Assembly: GCA_028826165.1 (NCBI GenBank)
Contig: JAPDFW010000073.1
Span: 62,001-126,000, forward strand
Source: Anaeramoeba ignava BMAN
Lineage: Eukaryota; Protista; Anaeramoebae
Direction: 5' to 3'
DNA length: 64,000 bases
Shown here: piece after piece, positions 3,701 through 27,800 of the stretch
Numbering within the stretch: position 1 is the first letter of the stretch
Layout: every line of letters starts with the position of its first letter
Notes under the pieces: model-generated
Database searches by the model: none
Told to the model about the DNA's origin: nothing
What the model saw: the letters and a program-made list of their open reading frames with translations, nothing else
Made by a program: the position numbers and the translations under genes

Positions 3701-5796
3701 AAGGAGTAAATTTTTTGATTCACAGAGGAATTGATCTTGATTTGCAAGATAAATATGGAAGAACAGTATTGATGCTAGCAGTAACATCAAAAAGAGACGA
3801 TGTGATAAACAAACTGCTTGAATCAGAAGCAAATGTGAATATTCAAAATAACAATTTTAAAACAGCGCTTCATTATTGTGTTGAGCAAAATAATATAAAC
3901 TTAACTAACGAAATGCTTCAAAAAGAAGGCGATCCAAATATTGAGGATGAAAACAAGGAAACTTGCCTTCATTTTGCAGTTATGAATAGAAATTTGAAGA
4001 TGATTGAGCTGCTTCTTGATCATAAAGCATCACCCAACAAGCAAAACATCAACGGAATGACACCACTTCATCTTGCAATCACACAAGAAATTAAAAAACA
4101 AGTTCAAATCATGGAATTGGATTCAAATCAAAATGATGTTCAAAAACAAGCTTCATCACTTGAAATTATAAAGCTGCTAATTGAAAAGGGGAGCGCAATT
4201 GTGGACACACAAAATGCAGAAGGAAACTATCCTATTCATTCATGTGTAATTCGGAAAGACATGGATTTACTAACATATTTACTTCAGAATAAAGCAAACA
4301 TCAATGCGGGAGATAGGGACGGAAGAACCCCACTTCATCTCGCAGCGTTGTCTTCAAACAACAGAATAATCGAACTTTTGGTGTCTTTTAATTCCGTTGT
4401 TGATATCTCTGACATTACTGATGTTGGCAGTTCACCTATTCATTTAGCTGCTGAAAATAATAATATTGAAGGAATTATGTTTTTACTCAGAAATGGATCA
4501 TCAATTAATTGTCTTAGACAAGATAGAAAATCACCTTTGCATCTTGCTGCAAAGAATGGCTTTAATGATCTTGTTTCTTTATTAGCTGAAAATGGAGCTG
4601 ATGTTAATCTTCAAGATTTTGATGGGAATACACCTCTTCATCTTAGTCTTAAAAGCAATCATGAAAGAACTTCTGCTTTAATTGCACAAAGTGGAGGTTA
4701 TTTGAATATGATTAATAATAAAGGTCAATCACCTTTACAATTAGCTAAGAATTCTAAAATTAAAAAAATGATTAAGGAAGCAAGTGAAAGATTTGCGAGT
4801 CAAGGTTTAACAAAACGAGGAACAATTCCTAATAGTAAAAACCAATTAAAATTAAAATTCATTTATAAAATTCATTTATAAAATTCATTTATAAAATTCA
4901 TTTATAAAATTCATTTATAAAATTAAAATAAAATTCAAATTAAAATTCATTTATAAAATCAAAATTAAAATTAAAATTAAAATCAAAATTAAATTCATTT
5001 ATAAAATTAAAATTAAAATTAAAATTAAAATTAAATTAAATTTAAAATTCATTTATAAAATTAAAATTAAAATTAAAATTAAAATTAAAATTAAAATTAA
5101 AATTAAAATTAAAATTAAAATTAAAATTAAAATTAAAATTAAAATTAAAATTAAAATTAAAATTAAAATTAAAATTAAAATCAAAATCAAAATTAAATTC
5201 ATTTATAAAATTCATTTATAAAATTAAAATTAAAATTAAAATTAAAATTAAAATTAAAATTAAAATTAAAATTAAAATTCATTTATAAAATTAAATTCAA
5301 AATTAAAATTAAAATTAAAATTAAAATTTAAATTCAAAAATATTTAGTTGTTACAGATATTAGAACTCCAGAATCTTCTATAGAATCTCATGATAAAAGA
5401 AAATCATTTAATCCAATGGGTGGTTTAGCTCTTGAAAAATTAAAATCTGCTAAATCAGCAGTTGATGCTCATGGTTTAATTCCAGAATATCTTAAAATTG
5501 TTTTCCATCTTAATGATAAAGCTGATGATTTTAAATCAAGAATTTCTACAAGAATTAATTTTGAATCTTCAGAAATTGAAAATGTTAAAGATATTTTAAT
5601 TTTTGCAAAAAAGAAAATTAAATTTGATCCTGAAAATGATGATCTTGATTCTTTTACAATTCTTTATGAAGATGAATCAAAAGAATATATTATTATTGAT
5701 TTTGAAACAAAACTTGAAGAAATTTTTAAATTTGGAAAATTAATTCATATTTTTCATAAAGAAGACTTTTTAAAATTATTTGGTTTATTTAAATGA
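789..5796 (+). CDS. Multi-exon signalling scaffold, 5' partial: RA/ubiquitin-like, helical region, PH, PX, ankyrin repeats, C-terminal PB1-like domain
   Basis: RVLNDDEKPLELG (RA-like, ~790); IREGFLLKKSRTWG..LVLTPRFLHYF and SEFEMNEWIRLI (PH, ~2245-2620); YQIQIESFNDKWIFTKKFVDFIDLGETLRKLLPIFIFPTVPK (PX-like); many G.TPLHLA ankyrin repeats (3220-4750); FTILYEDESKEYIII (PB1-like). Short GT-AG introns plus an (AAAATT)n intron at ~4834-5347; a few apparent frameshifts. Confidence 0.8.
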
Positions 5797-5868
5797 AAAA
5801 ATTTCAAGAAATCTTTTTTTCATTTTTTTCATTTTTATCTTTCCAAAAAAATTAAAAAATAAAAGAAA

Positions 5869-7651
5869 ATGAATGAAATTATATTTTTTGGAAGAAATGA
5901 AAAACCAAAACTTATCAAAAATGAAACAGAAAAAATAACAAAACCAATTCAATTTAAATTTAAAATGAAAATGAAAATGAAAATGAAAATGAAAAACAAA
6001 TTAAACAAATTTCAACAGGAGAATTTGCAACAATTTTCCTTTTTAAAAATGGAAAAGCAATAGAATATTTAAAAGAAAATGATTCAAATCAAAATCCTTC
6101 AAAAATCCAAATTGAAGAAAATATTCAAAAAGTAACTGTTGGTTATGATAATGAAGCTATTTTAACAATAGAAGGAAATGTATTTGCCAAAGGAAAAGAT
6201 ATTAATCCAAAAATCCAAATAAATTTATCAATATTTCATCATTAATTGAAGATACAAATGATAGAATAATTGAAGATATTGTTTCTAGTGCTGATTCAAT
6301 TTACTTATTAACTTCAAATCAAAATGTTTATGGAATTGGCTCAAATGTATTTGGTCAACTTGGTTTTGATTCTAAAACACTTGAAAAAACAGAAAAACCA
6401 ATTTTAATGATGAAAAATGTTTCTAAAATATTTTCAGGAACTTCTTCTCTTCATGTTTTTCTTTTAAATTCAAATCAAGAATTATTTGGATGCGGATTTA
6501 ATGTAAATGGTCAGCTTGGATTAGGAAAATCGTTATATGAGACAAAATTCGATAAATTAACCAAAATCCAAAATATTCCAAAAGGTAAAATAATTGATAT
6601 TAAATGTGGATTTAATCATTCAATAATGTTGATTGAAAATGAAAATGAAAATGAAAATCCAAAAAGAAAACTTTATTCATGTGGGTATTATCGATATAAT
6701 GGACTTGGCAAAACTAAAGATACTTATAAATTTACTGAAATCAAATCATCTTTATTTGAAAATGATGATGATAATATTATTGATTTTTCTATTGGTTATT
6801 ATCATACTTTGATTTTAACTTCCAATTCGAAATTAATTGTATTTGGAGATAATGATTTTGGTCAATTAGGAATTGGAGATATAATTAAACAATTAATTCC
6901 AATTCAAATTGAACTTCCTAAATTAAGATTTAATGAAAATATTTCCAATTATCATATCTCTTGTGGATATTCTAAATCATTTATTTATTATTATTCTTCT
7001 TTTTCCAATCTTGAAGAAGATTTGATAAAATTATTTGAAAGAAAAGAATTTTGTGATATTTCATTTAAAACAGAAAATGGAGAAATAATCTCAGCTCATA
7101 AATTAATATTGAAATATAGATTAAATCAAAATCAAAATGAAATTGAAAAACTTCAAGAAATTATTTCAAAAAAATCAATTAAAGAATCAAATCAAATATT
7201 TGAAATGATTTATTCAAACAATTCCATAATAAATCCAAAATTATATTCTGAAATTAAAGAAATTATAAATTCAAATGAAAAAATTGAAGAAACAATGAAA
7301 AGAATTTATTTAAATGAAAATGAAAATGAAAAAGATTTTATAATTGAAAGAAAAGAAAAACAATATAAATTTCCAAAATTAATATTAATAATGAGAAGTG
7401 AATTATATCGAGGAATGTTTTTATCTGTAACTGAAGATAAATCTAATAAAGTTACAGATTATAGTGAATTAAGTAATAAATCATTTCAAATATTTGAATA
7501 TTGGATTTATTCAAATCAAATCAAAGATGAAATTGAAATTACTCAAGAAATCCTTAATGAAATTCAAATAGGAATTGATTATTTTCAATTAAATCAAACA
7601 AATCCAAATTTATTTGATTTATTAATTAACAAATTTAATAATCAAAATTAA
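5869..7651 (+). CDS. RCC1-repeat + BTB protein, copy 1 (two apparent 1-nt frameshifts near 5963 and 6210)
   Basis: G.N..GQLG and CG..HS/T RCC1 motifs; FCDISF..AHKLIL BTB motif; collinear with the intact copies at 7895 and 13043. Confidence 0.85.
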
Positions 7652-7860
7652 AATTAAAATTAAAATCAAAATTAAAATTAAAATTAAAATTAAAATTAAA
7701 ATTAAAATTAAAATTAAAATTAAAATCAAAATTAAAATTAAAATTAAAATTAAAATCAAAATTAAAATTAAAATTAAAATCAAAATTAAAATCAAAATTA
7801 AAATTAAAATTAAAATTAAAATCAAAATTAAAATTAAAATCAAAATTAAAATTAAAAATC
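7652..7860 (+). repeat. (AAAATT/AAAATC)n tail after RCC1-BTB copy 1
   Basis: Hexamer array starting at the stop codon. Confidence 0.95.
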
Positions 7861-7894
7861 CAAAAATCATTTTTTCATTTTTTTCTTTTCAAAA

Positions 7895-9670
7895 ATGAAT
7901 GATTGTTTATTTTTTGGTTTAAATCAATATCCAATTCTTATCAAAAATGAAACAGATACAATAACAAAACCAATTCAATTTAAATTTGAAAATGAAAATG
8001 AAAATGAAAATGAAAATGAAAAACAAATTAAACAAATTTCAACAGGAGAATTTGCAACAATTTTCCTTTTTAAAAATGGAAAAGCAATAGAATATTTAAA
8101 TGAAAATGATTCAAATCAAAATCCTGAAAAAATCCAAATTGAAAATATTCAAAAAGTAACTGTTGGTTGGCAAAATGAAGCTATTTTAACAATAGAAGGA
8201 AATGTATTTGCAAAAGGTGAAGATATTAATACAAAAAATCCAAATAAATTTATCAATATTTCATCATTAATTGAAGATACAAATGATAGAATAATTGAAG
8301 ATATTGTTTCTAGTGCTGATTCAATTTACTTATTAACTTCAAATCAAAATGCTTATGGAATTGGTTTAAATGTATTTGGTCAACTTGGATTTGATTCTGA
8401 AACACTTAAAAAAACAGAAAAACCAATTTTAATGATGAAAAATGTTTCTAAAATATTTTCGGGAAATACTTCAAATCATGTTTTTCTTTTAAATTCAAAT
8501 CAAGAATTATTTGGATGCGGATTTAATCAATATGGTCAACTTGGATTAGGAGAATCAAGAAAAAAAGAAACACTAATCCAAAAATTAACCAAAATCCAAA
8601 ATATTCCAAAAGGTAAAATAATTGATATTCAATGTGGATTTAATCATTCAATAATGTTGATTGAAAATGAAAATGAAAATGAAAATCCAAAAAGAAAACT
8701 TTATTCATGTGGATATTCTGGATTTAATGGACTTGGCAAAGATGAAAATACTTATGAATTTACTGAAATCGAATCATCTTTATTTGAAAATGATTATATT
8801 ATTCTTGATTTTTCTATTGGTTATTATCATACTTTGATTTTAACTTCCAATTCGAAATTTATTGTATTTGGACATAATGAATTTGGTCAATTAGGAACTG
8901 GAAATACAAAAGATCAATCAATTCCTATTCAAATTGAACTTCCTAAATTAAGATTTAATGAAAATATTTCCAATTATCATCTTTCTTGTGGATTTAGTAA
9001 TTCATTTCTTTATTATTCTTCTTCTTTTTCCAATCTTGAAGAAGATTTGATAAAATTATTTGAAAGAAAAGAATTTTGTGATATTTCATTTAAAACAGAA
9101 AATGGAGAAATAATCAAAGCTCATAAATTAATATTGAAATATAGATTAAATCAAAATCAAAATCAAATTGAAAAACTTCAAGAAATTATTTCAAAAAAAT
9201 CAATTAAAGAATCAAATCAAATATTTGAAATGATTTATTCAAACAATTCCATAATAAATCCAAAATTATATTTTGAAATTAAAGAAATTATAAATTCAAA
9301 TGAAAAAATTGAAGAAACAATGAAAAGAATTTATTTAAATGAAAATGAAAATGAAAAAGATTTTATAATTGAAAGAAAAGAAAAACAATATAAATTTCCC
9401 AAATTAATATTAATAATGAGAAGTGAATTATATCGAGGAATGTTTTTATCTGTAACTGAAGATAAATCTAATAAAGTTACAGATTATAGTGAATTAAGTA
9501 ATAAATCATTTCAAATATTTGAATATTGGATTTATTCAAATCAAATTAAAGATGAAATTCAAATTACACAAGAAATAATTAATGAAATTCAAATAGGAAT
9601 TGATTATTTTCAATTAAATCAAACAAATCCAAATTTATTTGATTTATTAATTAACAAATTTAATAATTAA
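7895..9670 (+). CDS. RCC1-repeat + BTB protein, copy 2 (591 aa, intact, intronless)
   Basis: Complete ORF with RCC1 repeats and two BTB-like segments (FCDISF.., KDFII..LILIMRSELYRGMF). Confidence 0.92.
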   Translation: MNDCLFFGLNQYPILIKNETDTITKPIQFKFENENENENENEKQIKQISTGEFATIFLFKNGKAIEYLNENDSNQNPEKIQIENIQKVTVGWQNEAILTIEGNVFAKGEDINTKNPNKFINISSLIEDTNDRIIEDIVSSADSIYLLTSNQNAYGIGLNVFGQLGFDSETLKKTEKPILMMKNVSKIFSGNTSNHVFLLNSNQELFGCGFNQYGQLGLGESRKKETLIQKLTKIQNIPKGKIIDIQCGFNHSIMLIENENENENPKRKLYSCGYSGFNGLGKDENTYEFTEIESSLFENDYIILDFSIGYYHTLILTSNSKFIVFGHNEFGQLGTGNTKDQSIPIQIELPKLRFNENISNYHLSCGFSNSFLYYSSSFSNLEEDLIKLFERKEFCDISFKTENGEIIKAHKLILKYRLNQNQNQIEKLQEIISKKSIKESNQIFEMIYSNNSIINPKLYFEIKEIINSNEKIEETMKRIYLNENENEKDFIIERKEKQYKFPKLILIMRSELYRGMFLSVTEDKSNKVTDYSELSNKSFQIFEYWIYSNQIKDEIQITQEIINEIQIGIDYFQLNQTNPNLFDLLINKFNN

Positions 9671-9878
9671 AATTAAAATCAAAATTAAAATTAAAATCAA
9701 AATTAAAATTAAAATTAAAATTAAAATTAAAATTAAAATTAAAATTAAAATTAAAATTAAAATTAAAATTTAAATTTAAATTAAAATCAAAATCAAAATC
9801 AAAATCAAAATCAAAATTAAAATTAAAATTAAAATCAAAATTAAAATTAAAATTAAAATTAAAATTAAAATTAAAATT
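9671..9878 (+). repeat. (AAAATT/AAAATC)n tail after copy 2
   Basis: Hexamer array starting at the stop codon. Confidence 0.95.
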
Positions 9879-9925
9879 CCAAAAAATTTATTTTCATTTT
9901 TTTCTTTTTCCATTTTTTTGTTTTG

Positions 9926-11519
9926 ATGTTTCAGTTTAATAATCTTCATCAACCAAGAAATTTGAAAATTGTTATTTTAATTCTGTTTTTATTTCTTTTG
10001 TTCAACTTTTTTTATTTGCACAATTTTAGTTTTTTTTCAAGTAAATTTGAATGAAATTTTTGAAAATTCCAAAAAAAAAAAAAAAAAAAAAAGAAGAATG
10101 TTTTTTTTATCATTAAATTTATTATAATTAAAAGAATCAAAAGAAGAAATTAGGGATCTTAAAAAAAAATTAGATGAAAAAAATATAGAATTAGAATCAA
10201 AAAAGAAAGAGATTGAAATTTTAAAACTAAGAATTTTTGAAGTTGAAGAAGAATTCCTTGATTTATTAGAAAAATATGAAGAAAAGGAAGAAAAGAAAAG
10301 AAATTTGCAATATTTTTTAACAAATCCAGATTTTCAATTTGATTATCTTTATGAAAATTATCAAAATCCATTTTTATCTCAAGATGAAAAAGATTTAAAA
10401 TTTTATGAAGAGCCAAATAAAGGAAAAAAAGCAACAATTAAGAAAATAACAACAACGAACAACCAAATTGATTATCAGATAAATTATCCACCTTTTATTT
10501 TAGATGCTCCACATTTTTTGGATCAACGAAGTTTTGATAAATTTATGTATTTGGAAAAAAAAAGATATAATCAAGTGATTGATAAAAAAAAAAGGAAATT
10601 GCATTTTGATTTTGATGAGATGAGTGTTGGAACTTTATCTTTTCTTCGTGATTTTAGTTTTTCCTGGGCTCCTTCATGCAATCCATATGCAAAATTAAGT
10701 GATTTCCAACCAGCAAATGGAAATACTCTTAATTTTGAAAAACTTTTGATTATAAACAGTGATTGGATTTGGCAATTCCAACATTGGATCGATCATTTTG
10801 GATGCTTGATAATGGATTTAAGACCACTTATAAAGGATAAAGGATGGACTATTTTTGTTCAATATCCAAGTGACGAAATTCTTCTTCAACTTTTTGATTT
10901 TATTAAAAAGGATCTTAATGTGAATATTGTTTATCAAAGTGATTCATATTCAATTCATGCTGAATATGCGCTTTTTCCTTGCACACTTCCAAAAGAAAAC
11001 CCAAGGAAATTTCTTGATCTCAAGCATTTCTTGTTAAAATCAATTTTGGAAACGGATCATTTTCAAGAATATCAAGATCCAAATCCGGAAAAAATTATAT
11101 ACTTGCCAAGAGTGAATAATTTGAATGGAAGAAATATTGTGAATAGTGAAGAAGTTGTGGATTATTTGAAAAATCGATATGGAGAAAATTTAGTCATATT
11201 TTCTCACAAAGAATATCCAGATTTGAAAGACTTGGTTCAATTGTTTTCAAGCGCAAAAGTTGTCGTTGGATTGCATGGAGGCGCTTTTTATAATATAATA
11301 TTTAGTTTATCTCATCCTGTTGTGATTGAATTTCATCAACCAAAATTTGGAGTTGCTGATGCTTCCATTTATTGGATTTCTCATACAACTGGTTCTGAAT
11401 ACTGGAGGTTGTTCTCAAAACAAAAAGATTTGGATTCAGTTATTGATTTGATTGCTTTAGAACAAGTCTTAAATCTTGCTCTTAAAGGAAAATTATCATA
11501 CAATTTGATCATAAATTAA
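9926..11519 (+). CDS. Type II membrane glycosyltransferase, family GT61 (DUF563-like)
   Basis: ATG at 9926 followed by a hydrophobic anchor; a phase-1 intron at 10041-10134 joins in frame to the 10305 ORF; motifs FQHWID, IIYLPR..RNIVNSEEV, QLFSSAKVVVGLHGGAFYNIIF..VIEF. Confidence 0.85.
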
Positions 11520-11594
11520 AACAAATTTTTCATTTTTTCATTTTTTTCTTTTTTTCATTTTTATCTTTCCAAAAAAATTAAAAAATAAAAGAAA

Positions 11595-12761
11595 ATGAAT
11601 GAAATTATATTTTTTGGAAGAAATGAAAATCCAAAACTTATCAAAAATGAACTAAATATAATAAGAAAACCAATTCAATTTAAATTTGAAAATGAAAATG
11701 AAAATGAAAAACAAATTAAACAAATTGCACCAAGAAATTATTCAATAATTTTCCTTTTTGAAAATGGAAAAGCAATAGAATATTTAAATGAAAATGATTC
11801 AAATCAAAAACCTGAAAAAATCCAAATTGAAAATATTCAAAAAGTATCTGTTGGTTTTCAAAATGAAGCTATTTTAACAATAGAAGGAAATGTATTTGCA
11901 AAAGGATTTAATATTAATCCAAGAAATTCAGATGAATTTATCAATATTTCATCATTAATTGAAGATAAAAATGATAGAATAATTCAAGATGTTGTTTGTT
12001 CAAGAAATTCAATTTACTTGTTAACTTCAAATCAAAATGCTTATGGAATTGGTTTAAATGTATTTGGTCAACTTGGATTTGATTCTAAAACACTTAAAAA
12101 AACACAAAAACCAATTTTAATTATGAAAAATGTTTCTAAAATATTTTCAGGAAATTCTTCAAATCATGTTTTTCTTTTAAATTCAAATCAAGAATTATTT
12201 GGATGCGGATCTAATAGATGTGGTCAACTTGGATTAGGAGAATCAATAAAAGAAACACTAATCCAAAAATTAACCAAAATTCAAAATATTCCAAAAGGTA
12301 AAATAATTGATATTCAATGTGGATTTAATCATTCAATAATGTTGATTGAAGATGAAAATCAAAATCCAAAAAGAAAACTTTATTTATGTGGAGATTATAA
12401 ATATAATCAACCTTTTCAAAAAGAAAATACTTATGAATTTACTGAAATCAAATCATCTTTATTTGAAAATGATGATATTATTGATTTTTCTGTTGGAGGT
12501 GCTCATAATTTGATTTTAACTTCTAATTCAAAATTGATTGGATTTGGAATTAATGATTATGGCCAATTAGGAACTGGAAATATAATTAAACAATTAATTC
12601 CAATTCAAATTGAACTTCCTAAATTAAGATTTAATGAAGAAATTTCTAATTATCATCTTTCTTGTGGTTTTTCAAAATCATTTCTTTATTATTCTCCTCC
12701 TTCTTTTTCCAATCTTGAAGAAGATTTGATAAAATCAAAATTAAATCAAAATCAAAATTAA
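11595..12761 (+). CDS. RCC1-repeat protein, copy 3, lacking BTB (388 aa)
   Basis: Paralogue of the other copies up to SNLEEDLIK, then runs directly into the (AAAATC/T)n tail. Confidence 0.88.
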   Translation: MNEIIFFGRNENPKLIKNELNIIRKPIQFKFENENENEKQIKQIAPRNYSIIFLFENGKAIEYLNENDSNQKPEKIQIENIQKVSVGFQNEAILTIEGNVFAKGFNINPRNSDEFINISSLIEDKNDRIIQDVVCSRNSIYLLTSNQNAYGIGLNVFGQLGFDSKTLKKTQKPILIMKNVSKIFSGNSSNHVFLLNSNQELFGCGSNRCGQLGLGESIKETLIQKLTKIQNIPKGKIIDIQCGFNHSIMLIEDENQNPKRKLYLCGDYKYNQPFQKENTYEFTEIKSSLFENDDIIDFSVGGAHNLILTSNSKLIGFGINDYGQLGTGNIIKQLIPIQIELPKLRFNEEISNYHLSCGFSKSFLYYSPPSFSNLEEDLIKSKLNQNQN

Positions 12762-13008
12762 AATCAAAATTAAAATTTAAATTTAAAATCAAAATTAAAA
12801 TTAAAATTAAAATCAAAATTAAAATTAAAATTAAAATTAAAATTAAAATTAAAATCAAAATCAAAATCAAAATTAAAATTAAAATTAAAATTAAAAATTA
12901 AAATCAAAATTAAAATTAAAATCAAAATTAAAAATAAAATTAAAATTAAAACCAAAATCAAAATTAAAATTAAAATCAAAATCAAAATTAAAATTAAAAT
13001 TAAAAATC
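12762..13008 (+). repeat. (AAAATT/AAAATC)n tail after copy 3
   Basis: Hexamer array. Confidence 0.95.
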
Positions 13009-13042
13009 CAAAATTCATTTTTTCATTTTTTTCTTTTTAAAA

Positions 13043-14812
13043 ATGAATGAAATTTTATTTTTTGGTTTAAATCAATATCCAAAACTTATCAAAAATAAAC
13101 CAAATAAAATAACAAAACCAATTCAATTTAAATTTGAAAATGAAAATGAAAAACAAATTAAACAAATTTCAACAGGACATTTTTCAATAATTTTCCTTTT
13201 TAAAGATGGAAAAGCAATAGAATATTTAAAAAAAAATAATTCAAAACAAAATCCTGAAAAAATCCAAATTGAAGAAAATATTCAAAAAGTAACTGTTGGT
13301 AATGAAAATGAAGCTATTTTAACAATAGAAGGAAATGTATTTGCTAAAGGAGAAGATATTAATCCACAAAATACAAAAGAATTTATCAATATTTCATCAT
13401 TAATTGAAGATAAAAATGATAGAATAATTGAAGATATTGTTTCTGGAGCTCGTTCAATTTACTTATTAACTTCAAATCAAAATGTTTATGGAATTGGATC
13501 TAATGGTTATGCCCAACTTGGTGTTGATTCTGAAACACTTCCAAAAACAAAAAAACCAATTTTAATGATGAAAAATGTTTCTAAAATATTTTCAGGAAAT
13601 ACTTCAAATCATGTTTTTCTTTTAAATTCAAATCAAGAATTATTTGGATGCGGAAATAATGAACAAGGCCAACTTGGATTAAGAAAATCAATAAAAGAAG
13701 ACACAATCCAAAAATTAACCAAAATCCAAAATATTCCAAAAGGTAAAATAATTGATATTCAAGGTGGAAATAAGCATTCAATAATGTTGATTGAAAACCA
13801 AAATCAAAATGAAAATGAAAACCCAAAAAGAAAACTTTATTCATGTGGATATTATGAATATAATGGATTTGGCAAAAAATATCAAAATACTTATGAATTT
13901 ACTGAAATCAAATCATCTTTATTTGAAAATAATGATAATATTATTGAAATTTCTGTTGGATATTTTCATACTTTGATTTTAACTTCTAATTCGAAATTAA
14001 TTGGATTTGGATATAATAAATTTTGTGAATTAGGAACTGGAGATACAAATAAGCAATCAATTCCAATTCAAATTGAACTTCCTAAATTAAAATTTAATGA
14101 AAATGTTTTCAATTATCATATTCATTGTGGATTTTTCAATTCATTTCTTTATTATTCTCCTCCTTCTTTTTCCAATCTTGAAGAAGATTTGATAAAATTA
14201 TTTGAAAGAAAAGAATTTTGTGATATTTCATTTAAAACAGAAAATGGAGAAATAATTGAAGCTCATAAATTAATATTGAAATATAGATTAAATCAAAATC
14301 AAAATGAAAAACTTCAAGAAATTATTTCAAATAAATCAATTAAAGAATCAAATCAAATATTTGAAATGATTTATTCAAATAATTCCAAAATAAATCCAAA
14401 ATTATATTTTGAAATTAAAGAAATTATAAATTCAAATGAAAAAATTGAAGAAACAATGAAAAGAATTTATTTAAATGAAAATGAAAATGAAAATGATTTT
14501 ATTATTGAAAGAAAAGAAAAACAATACAAATTTCCAAAATTAATATTAATAATGAGAAGTGAATTATATCGAGGAATGTTTTTATCTGTAACAGAAGATA
14601 AATCTAATAAAGTTAGAGATTATAGTGAATTAAGTAATAAATCATTTCAAATATTTGAATATTGGATTTATTCAAATCAAATCAAAGATGAAATTGAAAT
14701 TACTCAAGAAATCATAGATGAAATTCAAATTGGAATTGATTATTTTCAATTAAATCAAACAAATCCAAATTTATTTGATTTATTAATTAACAAATTTAAT
14801 AATCAAAATTAA
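13043..14812 (+). CDS. RCC1-repeat + BTB protein, copy 4 (589 aa, intact, intronless)
   Basis: Complete ORF; the BTB half is nearly identical to copies 1 and 2. Confidence 0.92.
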   Translation: MNEILFFGLNQYPKLIKNKPNKITKPIQFKFENENEKQIKQISTGHFSIIFLFKDGKAIEYLKKNNSKQNPEKIQIEENIQKVTVGNENEAILTIEGNVFAKGEDINPQNTKEFINISSLIEDKNDRIIEDIVSGARSIYLLTSNQNVYGIGSNGYAQLGVDSETLPKTKKPILMMKNVSKIFSGNTSNHVFLLNSNQELFGCGNNEQGQLGLRKSIKEDTIQKLTKIQNIPKGKIIDIQGGNKHSIMLIENQNQNENENPKRKLYSCGYYEYNGFGKKYQNTYEFTEIKSSLFENNDNIIEISVGYFHTLILTSNSKLIGFGYNKFCELGTGDTNKQSIPIQIELPKLKFNENVFNYHIHCGFFNSFLYYSPPSFSNLEEDLIKLFERKEFCDISFKTENGEIIEAHKLILKYRLNQNQNEKLQEIISNKSIKESNQIFEMIYSNNSKINPKLYFEIKEIINSNEKIEETMKRIYLNENENENDFIIERKEKQYKFPKLILIMRSELYRGMFLSVTEDKSNKVRDYSELSNKSFQIFEYWIYSNQIKDEIEITQEIIDEIQIGIDYFQLNQTNPNLFDLLINKFNNQN

Positions 14813-15122
14813 AATCAAAATTAAAATTAAAATTAAAATTAAAATTAAAATTCAAAATTAAAATTAAAATTAAAATTAAAATTAAAATTAAAATTAAAAT
14901 TAAAATTAAAATTAAAATTAAAATTTAAAATTAAAATCAAAATTAAAATTAAAATTAAAATTAAAATTAAAATTAAAATTAAAATTAAAATTAAAATTAA
15001 AATTAAAATTAAAATTAAAATTAAAATTAAAAATAAAATTAAAATTAAAATTTAGAATTAAATTTATAATTAAAATCAAAATTAAAATTAATATTAAAAT
15101 TAAAATTAAAATTAAAAATTAA
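14813..15122 (+). repeat. (AAAATT)n tail after copy 4
   Basis: Hexamer array. Confidence 0.95.
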
Positions 15123-15456
15123 AAAAATTTTTTTTTCTTTTTTTTCTTTTTCATTTTTTTATTTAATATCATTCTTTTACAAATATTAAGTTGCTTATAT
15201 ATTTATTTTCATGATAGTTTTGTGCGAATTGTGTATATTTATGGATTTAACAATAATTTAATTAATAGTTTAATTACTTAAACATTTATCTATTTTTTAA
15301 CCTTAAAATAAAATAGTTTTTTTTAGTATTCTTATATGCTTCTATAAGTTCGATTATAAGTTCGATTATTAGTGTGTTTATATGAGTGCTTTTGTTTTGA
15401 CTTTTGTTATTGTTTCTTTTCATCTTCCATCTTATTTTTCTTGAAATTGCTACTGT

Positions 15457-20083: not shown

Positions 20084-21748
20084 ATGGATAATAATAATAA
20101 TAACCAAATTCAAAATGAAAATCAAAATGCAAATCAAAATGAAATGAAAATGAAATGAAAAATTTAGAAAAAAAAGTAACAAAAAATTTAATTAAAGATT
20201 ATTCAAACCTTTTAAATGGAAATTCATTTAAAGATTTTTCAATTTTTGTTGAGAATAAATCAAATCCTTTTGAAATTAAAGTTCATAAATCAATTTTATC
20301 TTCAAGATCTCCTTTTTTTAATGAGTCATTAAGGCAAGAATCTCTTTCTATTTCTTTAAATCAATTTAATAAAAAAGAAATGGAATCAATTTTGAGTTAT
20401 ATTTATTATGGAAATATTTCTTTTGAGAATCAAGAAAATCTTATTCAATTATTGGAAATTTCAATTTATTTTAAATTAAATTTATTGAAAGAAATTATTC
20501 AAAAAAAAATTTTAAATTCAATTAATTATTCAAATTTTTTCCAATTTTTATTCCAAAATCGAAATTTAAATTCAAATGAAATTGAAATAAAATGTTTTGA
20601 ATTAATAAATCAAAATTTTTCCCAAATTCAAAATAATGAAAATTTATTCAATTTAACTAAAGAAGAAATTATCAAATTTATTCAATTTAAACAAGAAAAA
20701 AAAGAAATTTTTCAATTTGATTTTTTTCAATTTTTAAATAATTGGATTGAAAAAAGAAATAAAAAATTAAAAGGAAAGAAAAGAAAAAGAAAAAGAAAAA
20801 GAAAAGGGAATTGAAAAGAAAAGATTATTTCATTCTTTTTTTTCATTATTTGATAAAGATTCAATTTCAAAACAAGATTTTGATAAATTAAAACAATTTG
20901 ATTTTTTTCCCAAATCTTTTTTAGTTGATATTCAAAACAAAGTTATTCAAGATAATCAAAAAGAAATTGAAAACAAAGAGAAGGAAATTGAAGATAAATG
21001 GAAGAAAGAAATTGAAGATAAAAACAAAGAAATTGAAAAGAATCAAAAAGAAATTGAAAACAAAGAGAAAGAAATTGAAGATAAAAACAAAGAGAAAGAA
21101 AATCAACAAATGAAAATTGAAATTGAAGAGAAATGGAAGAAAGAAGTTGAAGATATGAAATCCAAATTTGAATTAATGGAATTACAAAAGATTTTTTCAG
21201 ATTCAGAAATTGTTCAAGATATTGAATATGTTAAGAAATTACAAGAATGGATAAATGATAATGATTTTTTTTCTAAAATGAAAAAAGGATTTTCAGCAAA
21301 AAGAGATGGATTTAATTCTCAAAATTGGCATAAAGCAGTTGATGGGAAAGGAAAAACATTAGTTATTATCAAAACAAAAGATAATTTTATTTTTGGAGGT
21401 TTTACTCAAGTTGGATTTAAACCAAATGGAGGAGACATTAAAGATTCAAGTGCATTTATTTTTTCATTAAGAAATGATAAAGGAGATAGAATACCTGCAA
21501 AGTTTACAATTAAACAAGGCCAAGAAGGATATGCAATTTGTTCTCATTTAAGTTGTGGTCCAATATTTGGTTGGGATGGTCATGGTAATGATTTTCGTTT
21601 AGAATCTAATTTACAAGGTCATTCAAATTTTGGTCATAGTTATAATCTACCTAATGGAATTACTTGTGGAACAAATAAAGCTAAAAGTTATTTAGCTGGT
21701 TCTTATGATAAATGGATTGTTGATGAACTTGAATCTTATTTCATTTAA
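20084..21748 (+). CDS. BTB + coiled-coil + TLDc domain protein (intronless; apparent frameshifts at ~20150 and ~20800)
   Basis: FKDFSIFV..IKVHKSILSSRSPFF (BTB); GFSAKRDGFNSQNWHKAVDGKGKTLVIIKT..IFGGFT..AFIFSL..GPIFG (TLDc). Confidence 0.85.
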
Positions 21749-22864
21749 AAATTAATTAATAATAAGAAAATCAAACTTTTTTTTTTTAATTTTTTTTTTT
21801 TCAAAATTTAATTCAATTTTAATTTACTTTTAATCAAATTAATTTCTTTAAAATAATAAATAAGAAACAAATTTAATTTTAAATAATTTAATTTTAATTT
21901 AAAATATTTATTAAAAATTTAATTAATAAAAAATAATCCAAAAAAAAAAATAATAAATTTTAAAAAATTGAATATTTTTAATATAATAAATAAAAATAAA
22001 AATTGAAAATAGAAATTAATAATAATTAAATTTAAATTCATTAATTAAAATATTAAAATAAAAAAAATCAAATAAAATTTATTATTAATTAATATTTAAA
22101 TATTAATAAATTATAATCAAAATCAAAAATAGAATAATTAGTAAATTATTTTTTTAGAAAGTTTATCTTATTCAATCATGTTAAATTCAATTTATTTAAA
22201 ATTTTTAATTTTTATTTTTAATATATTTTATTATAATTAGGAATTGGAATAATAAATAATTAAAAATATTAATATAATAAATAAAAATATTATATAAATT
22301 AAAATAAAATAAATTTAAATTAAATTATTATTAAATATTATTAAAATTAGATATTTATGTTTATTAAAATATTTATTCCACTTTTTTTAATATATTTTAT
22401 TATAATTAAAATTAAAAAAAATAAATAAATAAATAAAATAAAAAATAAATTAATATAATAAATCTTTTATTAAAAAAATATTAAAATTAAATTTTACATT
22501 AAAATAAAATAAATTTAAATTAAATTATTATTAATTATTATTAAAATTAAATATTTATCTTTATTAAAATATTTCAATTTTTTCTCAATTTTATTTAAAC
22601 TATTTGGAATAATTTTATATTATTTTAAAATAAAAAAATATTAATAAAATATATAAAATATAATTAATTTTAAATTTAATCATTTAATATTCTTTATTCC
22701 ATTTTTGAAATAAATTAATGAAAAAGATTTTATTAATTTTATTAAATTATTGGGAATAGTTTTATATTATTTTAAATAAAGAAAAATTAATAAAATATAT
22801 AAAATATAATTAATTTTAAATTTAATTATTTAATATTCTTTATTCCATTTTTGAAATAAATTAA

Positions 22865-23150
22865 TGAAAAAGATTTTATTATTGAAAGAAAAGAAAAACA
22901 ATATAAATTTCCAAAATTAATATTAATAATGAGAAGTGAATTATATCGAGGAATGTTTTTATCTGTTACAAATGATACTTCTAATAAAGTTACAGATTAT
23001 AGTGAATTAAGTAATAAATCATTTCAAATATTTGAATATTGAATTTATTCAAATCAAATTAAAGATGAAGAAATTAAAATTACACAAGAAATTATTGATG
23101 AAATTCAAATTGAAATTGATTATTTTCAATTAAATCAAACAAATCTAAAT
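22865..23150 (+). pseudogene. 3' fragment of an RCC1-BTB gene (second BTB-like segment only) with an in-frame TGA
   Basis: KDFIIERKEKQYKFPKLILIMRSELYRGMFLSV..FEY*IYSNQIK..DYFQLNQTN; no upstream coding sequence. Confidence 0.88.
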
Positions 23151-23269: not shown

Positions 23270-24701
23270 TTAATCAATTTTAAAATGGAATTTTGTCCAG
23301 TCATAAATTGGATCACCCATTGGTAAAACTTCTCTTCCAACAAAATTATTCAAAGTTTTAGCTAACCAAACATAGAAACTAAGCAAAGCAGCCATAAAGA
23401 AGGGACAACCAGCTAAAACACCTGAAGCTCCATAAACAATTTTTAATATGAAAAAGAAGAAAGCAAGTGAAAAAGAAAAAAACAGAAAAAAAACAACTTT
23501 ATTTGTTTGAAGTGCAAATAAAGTTATAAAGGAAAGATGAACTAATCCAACAACAAAAAATGCTGATATTATTCTCATTTTGGGTCCTTCTATTGTTTTA
23601 CTATAATCCCAAAAGCCTGAAGTCCAAGCAGTTGCTAATGAGAACCAAAACAACGCAAATAACTTTTAATTATAATTTTAATTTTAATTTTGTAAATGAA
23701 TTTTAATTTTGAATTTAATTTTAATTTTAATTTTAATTTTAATTTTAATTTTAATTTTAATTTTAATATTAATTTTAATTTTAATTTTAATTTTATAAAT
23801 GAATTTTAATTTTAATTTTAATTTTAATTATAATTTTAATTTTAATTTTAATTTTAATTTTGATTTTGATTTTAATTTTAATTTTAATTTTAATTTTAAT
23901 TTTGATTTTAATTTTGATTATAATTTTAATTTTATAAATGAATTTCAATTTTAATTTTAATTTTAATTTTTAATTATAATTTTAATTTTAATTTTATAAA
24001 TGAATTTTAATTTTAATTTTAATTTTAATTTTAATTTTAATTTAAATTTTAATTTTAATTTTAATTTTAATTTTAATTTTAATTTTAATTTTAATTTTAT
24101 AAATGAATTTCAATTTTAATTTGAATTTTAATTTTAATTTGAATTTTAATTTTAATTTGAATTTTAATTTTAATTTGAATTTTAATTTTAATTTTAATTT
24201 TAATTTTAATATTAATTTTAATTTTGAATTTAATTTTTAATTATAATTTTAATTTTAATTTTGATTTTAATTTTGAATTTAAATTTTAATTTTGATTTTT
24301 ATTTTAATTTTTAATTAGAATTTTATAAATGAATTTCAATTTTATAAATGAATTTTAATTATAAAAGTTTCATCAAATTTATTTTGTTCTTAAATTCTCA
24401 CAAAAAAAGAACTAATTTCCCAAATAGATTTTTGTTTTATATTATGAATAGCAGAAATTAAAAGAATAATTCCTGGATAAAAAAGTAACCATTGAACTTT
24501 TGAAACTAAATAAAGAGAAAAAAATAAAAAAATATAAATAAAAAAGAAAGAAGAAAAAATAAAAGAAATTTTATATTAAAAACCTGTATTATCTGCAATA
24601 CCAAAATTTATAAAAGAAAGAACAATTGATCCAATTGATAAACCCATATAACCTAATTGAGTTGTTGTTACTTCTTTTTTAACTGGAGGAATTGTTTTCA
24701 T
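23270..24701 (-). CDS. GPR1/FUN34/SatP (AceTr) family acetate/monocarboxylate channel, divergent
   Basis: Exons ~24701-24584, ~24512-24401 and 23662-23270; TQLGYMGLSIGSIVLSFINFG resembles the NPAPLGL.GF motif; FW in TM3; C-terminus AG..AALLSFYVWLAKTLNNFVGREVLPMG; ~6 hydrophobic segments. Confidence 0.75.
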
Positions 24702-24817: not shown

Positions 24818-27800
24818 ATGGTTTCAATTAGAAATGCAACTATTGATGATTTATTTGCAATGCAAAATACAAATTTGCATTGTTTACCTGAAAATTATCA
24901 AATGAAATATTATTATTATCATCTTTTATCTTGGCCTCAAATTTCTTTTGTTGCTGTTGATTCAAAAAATAAAGTTGTTGGTTATGTTCTTGCTAAAATG
25001 TTTATATTCAATTTAATTAAAATCTTTTTTATAAAAACAAAAAAACAAAAAATTTTTTTAATAATTTTAAATTTAAAAAAATTTTTTTTACAAAATTTCA
25101 TTTATTAGGGATGATGAATATGTTGATAAAACTCCTCATGGTCATATAACCTCTTTAGCAATTAATAGACATTATCGAAAACTTGGAATAGCTACTAAAT
25201 TAATGAAACAAGCAGGTAAAAAGTCCATTAGAATCATTTAATTTATTTATAAAATTATTTATAAAATCAATTATAAAATTATTTATAAAATTAATTATAA
25301 AATTATTTATAAAATTATATATAAAATTAATTATAAAATTAAATATAAAATTATATATAAAATTAAATATAAAATTATTTATAAAATTAATTATTAAATT
25401 AAATATAAAATTATTTATAAAATTATTTATAAAATTAAATATAAAATTATTTATAAAATTATTTATAACATTATTTATAAAATTAATTATAAAATTAATT
25501 ATAAAATTATTTATAAAATTAATTATAAAATTATTTATAACATTATTTATAAAATTATTTATAAAATTATTTATAACATTATTTATAAAATTATTTATAA
25601 AAATTATTTATTAAATTATTTATGAGAAATTATTTATAAAATTAATTATAAAATTATTTATAAAATTATTTATAAAATTATTTATAAAATTATATAAAAT
25701 TATATATAAAATTATTTATAAAATTATTTATAAAATTAAATATAAAATTATTTATAAAATTATTTATAAAATTAATTATAAAATTATATATAAAATTAAA
25801 TATAAAATTAAATATAAAATTATTTATAAAATTAATTATAAAATTAATTATAAAATTATTTATAAAATTAATTATAAAATTATATATAAAATTATTTATA
25901 AAATTAATTATAAAATTAATTATAAAATTAAATATAAAATTATTTATAAAATTATTTATAAAATTAATTATAAAATTAAATATAAAATTATTTATAAAAT
26001 TATTTATAAAATTAATTATAAAATTATTTATAAAATTAAATATAAAATTATTTATTAAATTAAATATAAAATTATATAAAAATTAAATATAAAATTAAAT
26101 ATAAAATTATTTATAAAATTATTTATAAAATTAAATATAAAATTATTTATAAAATTAATTATAAAATTAAATATAAAATTATATATAAAATTATTTTATA
26201 AAATTAATTATAAAAATTAAATATAAAATTATTTATAAAATTATTTTATAAAATTAATTATAAAATTAAATATAAAATTATTTATAAAATTATTTATAAA
26301 ATTATTTATAAAATTATTTATAAAATTAATTATAAAATTAATTATTAAATTATTTATTAAATTATTTATAAAATTATTTATAAAATTATTTATAAAATTA
26401 TTTATAAAATTAAATATAAAATTATTTATAAAATTAAATATAAAATTATTTATAAAATTAATTATAAAATTAATTATAAAATTAATTATAAAAATTTATA
26501 AAATTAATTATAAAATTATTTATAAAATTAAATATAAAATTATTTATTAAATTAAATATAAAATTATATATAAAATTAAATATAAAATTAAATATAAAAT
26601 TATTTATAAAATTAATTATAAAATTATATATAAAATTAATTATAAAATTAAATATAAAATTATATATAAAATTATTTATAAAATTAATTATAAAATTAAA
26701 TATAAAATTATTTATAAAATTATTTATAAAAATTAATTATAAAATTAAATATAAAATTATTTATAAAATTATTTATAAAATTATTTATAAAATTATTTAT
26801 AAAATTAATTATTAAATTATTTATTAAATTATTTATAAAATTATTTATAAAATTATTTATAAAATTATTTTATAAAATTAAATATAAAATTATTTATAAA
26901 ATTAAATATAAAATTATTTATAAAATTAATTATAAAATTAATTATAAAATTAATTATAAAATTATTTATAAAATTAATTATAAAATTAATTATAAAATTA
27001 ATTATAAAATTAAATATAAAATTATTTATAAAATTAATTATAAAATTATTTATAAAATTAAATATAAAATTATATATAAAATTAAATATAAAATTAATTA
27101 TAAAATTAAATATAAAATTAAATATAAAATTATATATAAAATTATTTATAAAATTATTTATAAAATTATTTATAAAATTATTTATAAAATTATTTATAAA
27201 ATTATTTATAAAATTATTTATAAAATTATTTATAAAATTATTTATAAAATTATTTATAAAATTATTTATAAAATTATTTATAAAATTATTTATAAAATTA
27301 TTTATAAAATTATATATAAAATTATTAATAAAATTATTTATAAAATTATTTATTAAATTATTTATAAAATTAAATATAAAATTAATTATAAAATTAAATA
27401 TAAAATTATTTATAAAATTAATTATAAAATTAAATATAAAATTATTTATAAAATTATTTATAAAATTAAATATAAAATATAAATATAACAGAGAAAGCTA
27501 TGGAAACTGTTTTTGGAGCAAAATATGTTTCTTTACATGTTCGAGAAAGTAATCGAGCTGCTTTAGGATTATATGCAGGAGTTTTAAAATTTGAGTAAAA
27601 AACAAACCAATTATTTATAAATAATTTTATATTAAATTTATATTAAAATTTTAACAAAAAGAAAACATAAAGTTGAAGAAGGATATTATGCTGATGGTGA
27701 AAATGCTTTTGAAATGAGAAAATTCCTTGATCAAAAAGTTGCTGAAGAATATAAAAAGGAACAAGAAGAAAAAGAAAAAGAAAAAGAAAAAGAAAAAGAA

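Follow-up and report, generated by a model that had tools for sequence, protein, structure and literature searches.

In the genome of Anaeramoeba ignava BMAN, about 1,290 RCC1-BTB genes without introns form a family that is spread in small arrays over hundreds of loci. Their stop codon is supplied by the first TAA-bearing unit of a microsatellite, (AAAAT[T/C])n. We set at roughly even the chance that three recombination processes working together at the DNA level, namely unequal crossing-over, short-tract gene conversion, and the duplication and deletion of larger blocks, have amplified this family and kept its members uniform. The anatomy of the genes, their orientation, the similarity of neighbours, mosaicism and rearrangement junctions are directly observed and are described below, both for the window (the whole stretch of 64,000 nucleotides that was analysed) and for the genome; the recombination processes are what these patterns, read in the sequence of one strain, would point to. 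At stake is how a repertoire of variable adaptors can grow and yet stay uniform and diverse at once: if the genome has about 15,000 genes, a total inferred from LGT figures that the genome paper gives, about 8% of A. ignava genes are copies of this one variable adaptor gene.

The RCC1-BTB family

A 25-mer BTB marker has 1,292 matches in the genome. The ORF measures about 1.77 kb and lacks internal stops in 73 of 75 scored copies, and the full-length proteins are about 85-89% identical, with variation confined to a few tens of codons. Forty-five columns with a Gini value above 0.6 have a dN of 0.79, against a dN of 0.05 and a dS of 0.092 for the scaffold. Scaffold dS falls within a narrow, star-like range (0.074-0.114), which a recent burst would also fit. 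In this free-living amoeba the gene products probably serve as cullin-3-type adaptors inside the cell and not as surface antigens.

The ten full-length matches of an exhaustive search that were looked up (36-59% identity) all proved to be A. ignava proteins, two metagenome scans found no relatives, and no transcript or assembly contig on record encodes copy 2 or P0005; neither the genome paper nor its supplements contain a description of the family. At 43% identity, the nearest outgroup paralogue (C145:82885-84699) is a single uninterrupted frame, so the absence of introns is older than the family expansion.

The array in the window

The preliminary description had recognized four RCC1-BTB genes in the window, each laid out as an initiator tract, an intronless ORF and an (AAAATT/C)n tail followed at once by the next tract. 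This layout is present at the copies (Table 1): Tandem Repeats Finder (TRF) delimits four tails of 223-333 bp with 88-94% matches, and a TTTTCATTTT tract follows each of them. The assignment to RCC1-BTB, taken as Pfam RCC1, RCC1_2 or WD40_RLD repeats followed by a BTB/POZ domain, holds for copies 1, 2 and 4 (E-values for copies 2 and 4 of 5e-23 to 1.6e-24 for RCC1 and 2e-10 to 1.2e-9 for BTB; the intact ORF of copy 1 matches both domains), but copy 3 matches RCC1 alone. Homology between copy 3 and the full copies stops at about 12736 with the tail directly next, about 640 bp including the BTB half having been lost in a deletion that ends in the tail at AAAAT microhomology. Copy 1 is disrupted by two 1-nt deletions, at about 5962 and 6207; the resulting frameshift had been overlooked, and its ATG had been placed one nucleotide too far downstream, at 5870. 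Also overlooked was a fifth family piece, in which a TGG has changed to TGA, and which sits downstream of a gene at 20155-21748 (typed as BTB-BACK-TLDc from its terminal sequence) and an AT-rich spacer. An Rfam search of the window gave no match.

Table 1. Features of the RCC1-BTB array and its neighbours in the window
Feature	Position	Strand	Remarks
Probable last intron of ankyrin gene	4835..5347	+	513 bp; GT..AG bounds, ORF continuity
Leader, copy 1	5797..5868	+	Long 'A-type'; between ankyrin stop and copy 1
Copy 1	5869..7651	+	RCC1-BTB family member, frameshifted; longest intact ORF 6407-7651
Tail 1	7631..7857	+	(AAAAT[T/C])n, begins within last codons of copy 1 (TRF)
Leader, copy 2	7858..7894	+	Canonical; T-rich tract, TCA 19-22 nt before ATG
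Copy 2	7895..9670	+	Intact, 591 aa; RCC1 propeller and BTB
Tail 2	9656..9878	+	TRF
GT61 gene	9879..11519	+	Leader 9879-9925, exon 1 9926-10040, intron 10041-10134, exon 2 10135-11519
Leader, copy 3	11520..11594	+	Long; same type as copy 1 leader
Copy 3	11595..12761	+	RCC1-only remnant, 388 aa
Tail 3	12730..13005	+	TRF
Leader, copy 4	13006..13042	+	Canonical
Copy 4	13043..14812	+	Intact, 589 aa
Tail 4	14792..15160	+	Repeat to 15124 (TRF), then degenerate initiator-like tract
Fifth family piece	22867..23150	+	Last 284 bp of ORF, 5'-truncated; tail stub

The copies had further been described as two pairs, (A,B) and (A',B'), on either side of the GT61 gene. This pairing applies to the leader and roughly the first 45 nt, but not to the ORF bodies, where copies 1 and 2 are the closest (94% identity), followed by copies 2 and 4 (93%), 1 and 3 (89%), and 3 and 4 (87.5%). 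Copy 1 thus has its leader in common with copy 3 and its body in common with copy 2.

Both neighbouring genes contain introns, as had been proposed, with one in the GT61 gene and one probable in the ankyrin gene, and copies 1 and 3 do lie close behind their stops: the ankyrin gene stops at 5794-5796, ahead of the first initiator tract at 5817, and the GT61 stop (11517-11519) precedes the next tract by about 10 bp. The joined GT61 exons encode 499 aa, the same length as NCBI M0811_08444, and a search with the protein matched A. ignava proteins only (GT61 and methyltransferase searches used single exons). The ankyrin intron is packed with (AAAATT)n and a compound CATTTAT variant (TRF array 4918-5338), an arrangement repeated in the ankyrin paralogue on C77; because (AAAATT)n also fills this intron, the 'tail' repeat cannot be called a cassette-specific feature.

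Leader, tail and the embedded stop codon

The family leader is a conserved element of about 27 nt, and the T-rich tract upstream of its TCA is likewise conserved among family leaders. The motif that it contains, TTTTCATTTT, is of promoter type and present ahead of many genes, the GT61 gene included, whose leader resembles that of the family. The expectation that the next gene's initiator would always follow a tail was borne out at each tail, but with a generic promoter motif this is trivial and the observation uninformative; after tail 4 the tract is degenerate and has no gene behind it, the next gene being convergent. No exact match to the 26-nt leader plus ATG and a non-A base occurs in the genome, and 27 of the first 100 places with the exact 21-nt leader core have no family start behind them. 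With these 27 places we dropped the idea of an exclusive family leader, and they also weaken the idea that the arrays donate promoters to downstream genes.

What is specific to the family is the position of the stop codon within the repeat; the leader motif and (AAAATT)n are themselves generic. The stop is the first TAA unit of (AAAAT[T/C])n, and the repeat then continues for up to about 450 bp or more. A tail within 60 nt of the stop was found at 48 of 58 family ORF ends versus 4 of 53 others (Fisher p = 1.4e-16). After the residues KFNN the ORF ends directly in a stop in seven copies, in QN-stop in 25, in QNQN-stop in seven and in QNQNQN-stop in one, such that tail length varies by slippage and the C-terminus shifts in steps of two residues. 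The tail carries AUUAAA/UAAA every 6 nt, which from sequence suggests a putative poly(A) or terminator region. For annotators, an (AAAATT)n tract beside an RCC1-BTB gene is not to be taken as a transposon tail.

Genomic arrangement and mosaicism

The first 100 marker places include 50 neighbour pairs no more than 3.5 kb apart, of which 47 lie on the same strand, head-to-tail (p = 4e-11); the median spacing is 1,992 bp. The same places fall into 53 same-strand clusters, 25 of which are single by marker, a count that truncated copies and those whose marker has diverged make too high; so extreme a scatter sits awkwardly with our preferred reading. A head-to-tail neighbour was present at all 30 sampled copies, a possibly biased sample of best-scoring matches, all in arrays, and the hundreds of arrays are small, with 1-6 units each. 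In 18 of 40 tests the adjacent copy was the most similar of 31 (p = 8e-17). All four gametes occur in about 50% of informative-site pairs, even within 30 nt, and none of 300 permutations in a PHI-like test reached the observed value, a mosaicism to which recurrent mutation at AT-biased sites could contribute.

The genes upstream of seven array 5' edges (ankyrin, GT61, BTB-BACK-TLDc, STRA6-like, radical SAM and two unknowns) are all unrelated, in keeping with the earlier view that the unit is discrete and self-contained. Array edges lie within tens of bp of unrelated housekeeping genes and share no common flank, which is hard to account for by ordinary segmental duplication and also counts against our preferred reading. 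Homology is nevertheless not confined to the cassette throughout, as had been supposed, and it runs past the edges in two cases. In the first, the fifth piece matches its counterpart on C147 at 97% identity, and the two have about 650 bp of upstream flank in common at 92%; this block with its truncated family end has the same junction 38 times in the genome, and a junction common to 38 copies marks the truncated piece as a single event copied as DNA. In the second, a 9.3-kb segmental duplication, 95-97% identical between C74 and C77, has the copy 1 leader as its right-hand end and stops 1-2 nt before the copy 1 ATG; on C77 the same leader stands ahead of a single-copy METTL23-like gene, for which a search found no Anaeramoeba protein beyond the A. 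ignava gene itself. Two junctions therefore fall within low-complexity boundary elements, the leader in the C74/C77 duplication and the microsatellite in the copy 3 deletion. On C67, too, the closest GT61 paralogue directly follows a family copy with tail and leader. The two GT61 paralogues are only 58% identical in protein, and the family copy upstream of them retains 91-94% DNA identity to the rest of the family. Thus blocks larger than the cassette have also spread, as both the 38-fold junction and the family copy and tail upstream of the two GT61 paralogues attest.

How the family may have spread

Under the recombination reading that we favour, each gene would be a compact intronless transcription unit consisting of the leader, built on an ordinary T-rich/TCA promoter motif, the ORF and the tail. 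Unequal crossing-over would produce the short head-to-tail arrays. Pervasive short-tract gene conversion would produce mosaic copies and homogenize only the shared unit, and such conversion of the unit alone would leave homology ending sharply at leader and tail as the flanks drift. Duplications and deletions of blocks would complete the picture, with junctions tending to fall in the leader and tail.

The foremost alternative, which we regard as unlikely, is that the cassettes themselves are mobile as DNA: (AAAATT)n-bounded units would be excised or copied, for instance when recombination between the tails on either side releases a circle or through ectopic gene conversion, and placed without a transposase by homology at repeat or promoter tracts. 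The raw material is plentiful, since (AAAATT)n is a genome-wide microsatellite with thousands of tracts co-oriented with the nearest ORF, and its complex repeat variant is common to tails and intronic arrays; most of the tracts outside the family are however intronic, so that insertion there would break the host gene. The repeat lies within 90 nt upstream of 37 of 44 family copies, and at four of the seven 5'-edge copies 12-110 nt of it separates the upstream gene's stop from the leader, versus a repeat after the stop at 2 of 53 non-family ORF ends otherwise. Copies 1, 3 and L011, on the other hand, have no upstream repeat, and L007 and L018 have no tail. The scatter of the family across hundreds of loci and the co-orientation of six of the seven 5'-edge copies with the upstream gene would also be accommodated, but no empty/filled pair was found among the loci compared, and blocks with other boundaries have spread as well. 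About as unlikely is the specific proposal that leader and tail are the homology handles by which whole units moved or were copied, through circle excision and re-entry or ectopic conversion, to seed several hundred loci. If it were true, transposase-free, homology-guided mobility of gene cassettes would have built a germline repertoire of some 1,290 variable adaptor genes.

The preliminary description also offered retro-copying. In the form considered here, mRNA would be reverse-transcribed by a resident non-LTR element and (AAAATT)n would take the place of the poly(A) or of an RT-primed tail. The units are indeed intronless and scattered, their divergence is star-like, a 5'-truncated piece with a tail exists, and the genome contains 17 reverse transcriptase matches, about eight of them in long open frames, such as those at C64:586665 and C42:41593. 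Yet the outgroup paralogue is itself intronless, and the truncated piece has the single junction common to 38 copies. There is no poly(A) at the 3' ends of copies, where (AAAAT[T/C])n runs into a T-rich tract, and the repeat starts inside the ORF and varies in length by slippage. The head-to-tail order of close pairs and the conserved T-rich tract upstream of the TCA speak against it as well, and we consider spread by this route very improbable; no target-site duplication is visible at either edge of the array in the window. Very improbable too is capture by an unrecognized DNA transposon (Helitron, Crypton, Pack-type or Maverick-like), as no terminal inverted repeats or hairpin ends surround the units (only low-complexity matches of 70-79%), the unit edges are the gene's own promoter and the repeat, and the 30 arrays that were sampled have no linked transposase gene.

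Comparison with other gene systems

Arrays of rDNA, histone and snRNA genes, and those of trypanosomatids, are homogenized by unequal crossing-over and gene conversion. The RCC1-BTB units resemble such concerted-evolution arrays in their head-to-tail order, short spacer and greatest likeness between neighbours, but the arrays are tiny and number in the hundreds, the units are non-identical with about 45 hypervariable codons, and the stop codon comes from the spacer, a microsatellite found across the genome. Processed retrogenes and LINE retrocopies are likewise intronless and dispersed, and the 5'-truncated piece recalls them, but the RCC1-BTB units lack poly(A), keep their own promoter, are mostly tandem and co-oriented, and have an intronless outgroup paralogue.

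Large archives of variable ORFs are also known from the VSG genes of Trypanosoma brucei, with their upstream 70-bp repeats (PMC8612549, PMC2900300), and from the MSG genes of Pneumocystis, with the CRJE junction element at the gene start (PMC2743713, PMC10622565). Shared with both are mosaic genes and short conserved or repetitive boundary blocks, which in those systems act as homology for conversion, and the MSG element at the ORF start is paralleled by the leader junction of the C74/C77 duplication. Unlike VSG and MSG genes, each RCC1-BTB copy has its own promoter-like leader, which argues against a single expression site. The microsatellite stop, the two-residue C-terminal steps, the leader and tail junctions and the mosaicism together offer handles by which the growth of a repertoire through recombination could be measured in a free-living eukaryote.

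The stop codon itself recalls the 'dual-use' stops of compact protist genomes, which overlap the poly(A) signal (PMC11529991). The RCC1-BTB stop TAA similarly lies inside AUUAAA/UAAA-type motifs amid very tight gene spacing, but here, where a poly(A) role is putative, the motif forms a microsatellite of tens of repeats.

The RCC1-BTB array and its unit

Four RCC1-BTB genes stand head to tail in the window (C74:62001-126000) of this 42.8-Mb genome (~18% G+C, standard genetic code), which NCBI names on its protein matches identify as Anaeramoeba ignava. A GT61 glycosyltransferase gene separates the second from the third. Behind each ORF come 223-333 bp of (AAAAT[T/C])n microsatellite, the ‘tail’, and then a T-rich tract with TCA. 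As all of these features are present, the layout given in the preliminary description is correct. The GT61 gene has a 94-nt intron, and its two exons sum to 499 codons, matching M0811_08444 in length. Copy 1 is frameshifted by its two deletions, while homology of copy 3 to the full copies ends at ~12736 and the repeat sets in at once; ~640 bp have been deleted here, with AAAAT microhomology and an end point inside the tail.

Coordinates of the features discussed (window positions unless a contig, C, is named; L, loci sampled from the same genome)
Feature	Position	Remarks
RCC1-BTB copy 1	start 5869	two 1-nt deletions
RCC1-BTB copy 2	7895-9670	intact
RCC1-BTB copy 3	11595-12761	propeller only
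RCC1-BTB copy 4	13043-14812	intact
5′-truncated family end	22867-23150	284 bp of RCC1-BTB ORF end; behind BTB-BACK-TLDc-type gene and AT-rich spacer
Spacer/ORF-end junction	22853-22888	AT-rich spacer joined to last ~318 bp of RCC1-BTB ORF; identical at 38 places on ~25 contigs
Array-filled ankyrin intron	4835-5347	(AAAATT)n
CATTTAT-compound arrays	4854-5292, 23686-24356, 30486-30504	also L004, L010, L023, L024, L029, L033, L045, L046, L052 and others
Duplicated segment	C74:58569-67868 (window -3431 to 5868)	9.3 kb, includes ankyrin gene; second copy C77:47119-56199
Family copy and paralogue P0176	C145:79096-84699	P0176 2 kb downstream, same strand
Reverse-transcriptase matches (examples)	C64:586665, C42:41593, C45:47885
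(TTATTTATAAAA)n satellite	25243-27478	2.2 kb, 0% G+C
Similar array	~C77:71100-73490	78% identical
(ATTTCATTTA)n satellite	39381-40430	10-bp unit, ~105 units, 97% pure

Genome-wide, a 25-mer marker from the second BTB region has 1,292 matches (≤2 mismatches). The 75 protein matches that were scored show 85-89% full-length identity to copy 2, and 73 of them lack an internal stop. The A. ignava genome paper does not mention the RCC1-BTB family. Among 44 copies examined, the conserved stretch upstream of the ATG, or ‘leader’, spans ~27 nt; in 39 of them the ATG comes 19-22 nt after the last TTTCATTTT, and in the four with a long leader, of the kind seen in copies 1 and 3, the distance is 39-51 nt. 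Past ..KFNN, ORFs end directly in TAA (7) or in QN-stop (25), QNQN-stop (7) or QNQNQN-stop (1), so that the microsatellite itself supplies the stop codon with its first TAA unit; the C-terminus of the family is altered by C/T changes or slippage within this repeat. Tails range from none (L007, L018) to >400 bp, and the leader of L007 contains repeat units. The central copies of L013, L014 and L016 have a longer C-terminus with a CaaX-like box (e.g. ..CLIF, ..CSIF) in place of QN-stop, the usual ORF end persisting in L016 as untranslated sequence ahead of the repeat.

Generic and family-specific elements

Parts of this unit are widespread. The window contains 25 instances of the motif TTTTCATTTTTT (5.3 expected), and the motif stands upstream of many unrelated genes; 27 of the first 100 exact matches to a 21-nt leader core have no family start behind them, at least four of these leading into other ATG starts. 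Exact (AAAATT)6 has ~41,000 matches genome-wide, overlapping ones counted, and in 324 kb examined we found 47 repeat arrays at family 3′ ends and ~70 elsewhere; the remaining arrays of the window occupy introns, such as that of the ankyrin gene. Of 24 non-family arrays (window and loci L032-L054), 21 point the same way as the ORF closest to them. The family-specific feature is the repeat immediately behind the stop codon, found at 48 of 58 family ORF ends versus 4 of 53 other ORF ends. A compound variant with CATTTAT between units is common to (AAAATT)n arrays across the genome, and this shared variant suggests that tail and intron arrays are of common descent or in mutual exchange. The AUUAAA/UAAA content of the tail, and comparison with other protists (PMC11529991), raise the idea that it might act as a poly(A)/terminator region.

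Signature of a recombining, partly homogenized family

The first 100 places at which the marker matches (contigs C1-C13) make up 53 same-strand clusters of 1-6 units. Spacing has a median of 1,992 bp, and the two members lie on the same strand in 47 of 50 close pairs. The marker overcounts single-copy clusters: the window alone would give two false singles, namely copy 4, because the marker is absent from the adjacent copy 3, and the 5′-truncated family end. A head-to-tail neighbour is present at all 30 best-scoring loci, and of 40 tests for the most similar of 31 copies, 18 picked the adjacent one. For the scaffold, dS is 0.092 (range 0.074-0.114) and dN/dS 0.55, with 45 hypervariable codons. 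About half of informative-site pairs are tree-incompatible, even ≤30 nt apart, and incompatibility grows with distance. Copies 1 and 3 have a common leader and ~45 nt beyond, and the body of copy 1 is nevertheless closest to copy 2. This pattern of similarity and incompatibility bears the signature of a recombining, partly homogenized family. On C145, old and young RCC1-BTB lineages adjoin, as the outgroup paralogue P0176 sits beside a regular family copy.

Junctions, duplicated blocks and possible routes of dispersal

The C74/C77 duplication (95-97% identical) has its right end 1-2 nt ahead of the copy 1 ATG; on C77 this leader introduces a METTL23-like methyltransferase gene, present as a single copy, in place of the RCC1-BTB array. 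A CCCH zinc-finger-like gene also lies past the duplication there (L046, L047). The truncated family end recurs on C147 with ~650 bp of upstream flank in common, and the 38 junction copies mean that blocks with boundaries unlike those of the RCC1-BTB unit have dispersed too. The AT-rich spacer contains 146-bp tandem repeats, and the gene ahead of it is probably of BTB-BACK-TLDc type, its terminal sequence resembling that of a Pfam-tested gene at L005. This second amplified block, downstream of BTB-BACK-TLDc genes, terminates in the family 3′ end and tail.

On C67, too, a family copy, a ~230-bp tail and a canonical-type leader immediately precede a GT61 gene, the closest paralogue (58% protein identity) of the one in the window, and that family copy has 91-94% DNA identity to others. 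This linkage, shared with the window, fits an old block that has stayed linked while its family part was homogenized; independent events at the two sites may also account for it.

Separate family loci are very numerous, and at seven array edges the neighbours, only tens of bp distant, are unrelated genes (ankyrin, GT61, BTB-BACK-TLDc, STRA6-like, radical SAM and two unknowns). That new sites were seeded by a homology-guided route via repeat or leader seems to us unlikely.

The proposed retro-copying, and RNA-mediated or transposon spread generally, are disfavoured: no poly(A) was found at unit ends and no TIRs flanking units, arrays are co-oriented, copies retain a T-rich tract upstream of TCA, and P0176, as the nearest outgroup paralogue (43% identity), likewise consists of one uninterrupted frame, so that intron absence predates the expansion. 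Reverse-transcriptase matches occur at 17 places, and ~8 of these lie within open frames 1,100-1,870 aa long.

Two satellites also lie in the window, of TTATTTATAAAA and ATTTCATTTA units, the former with a similar array on C77.
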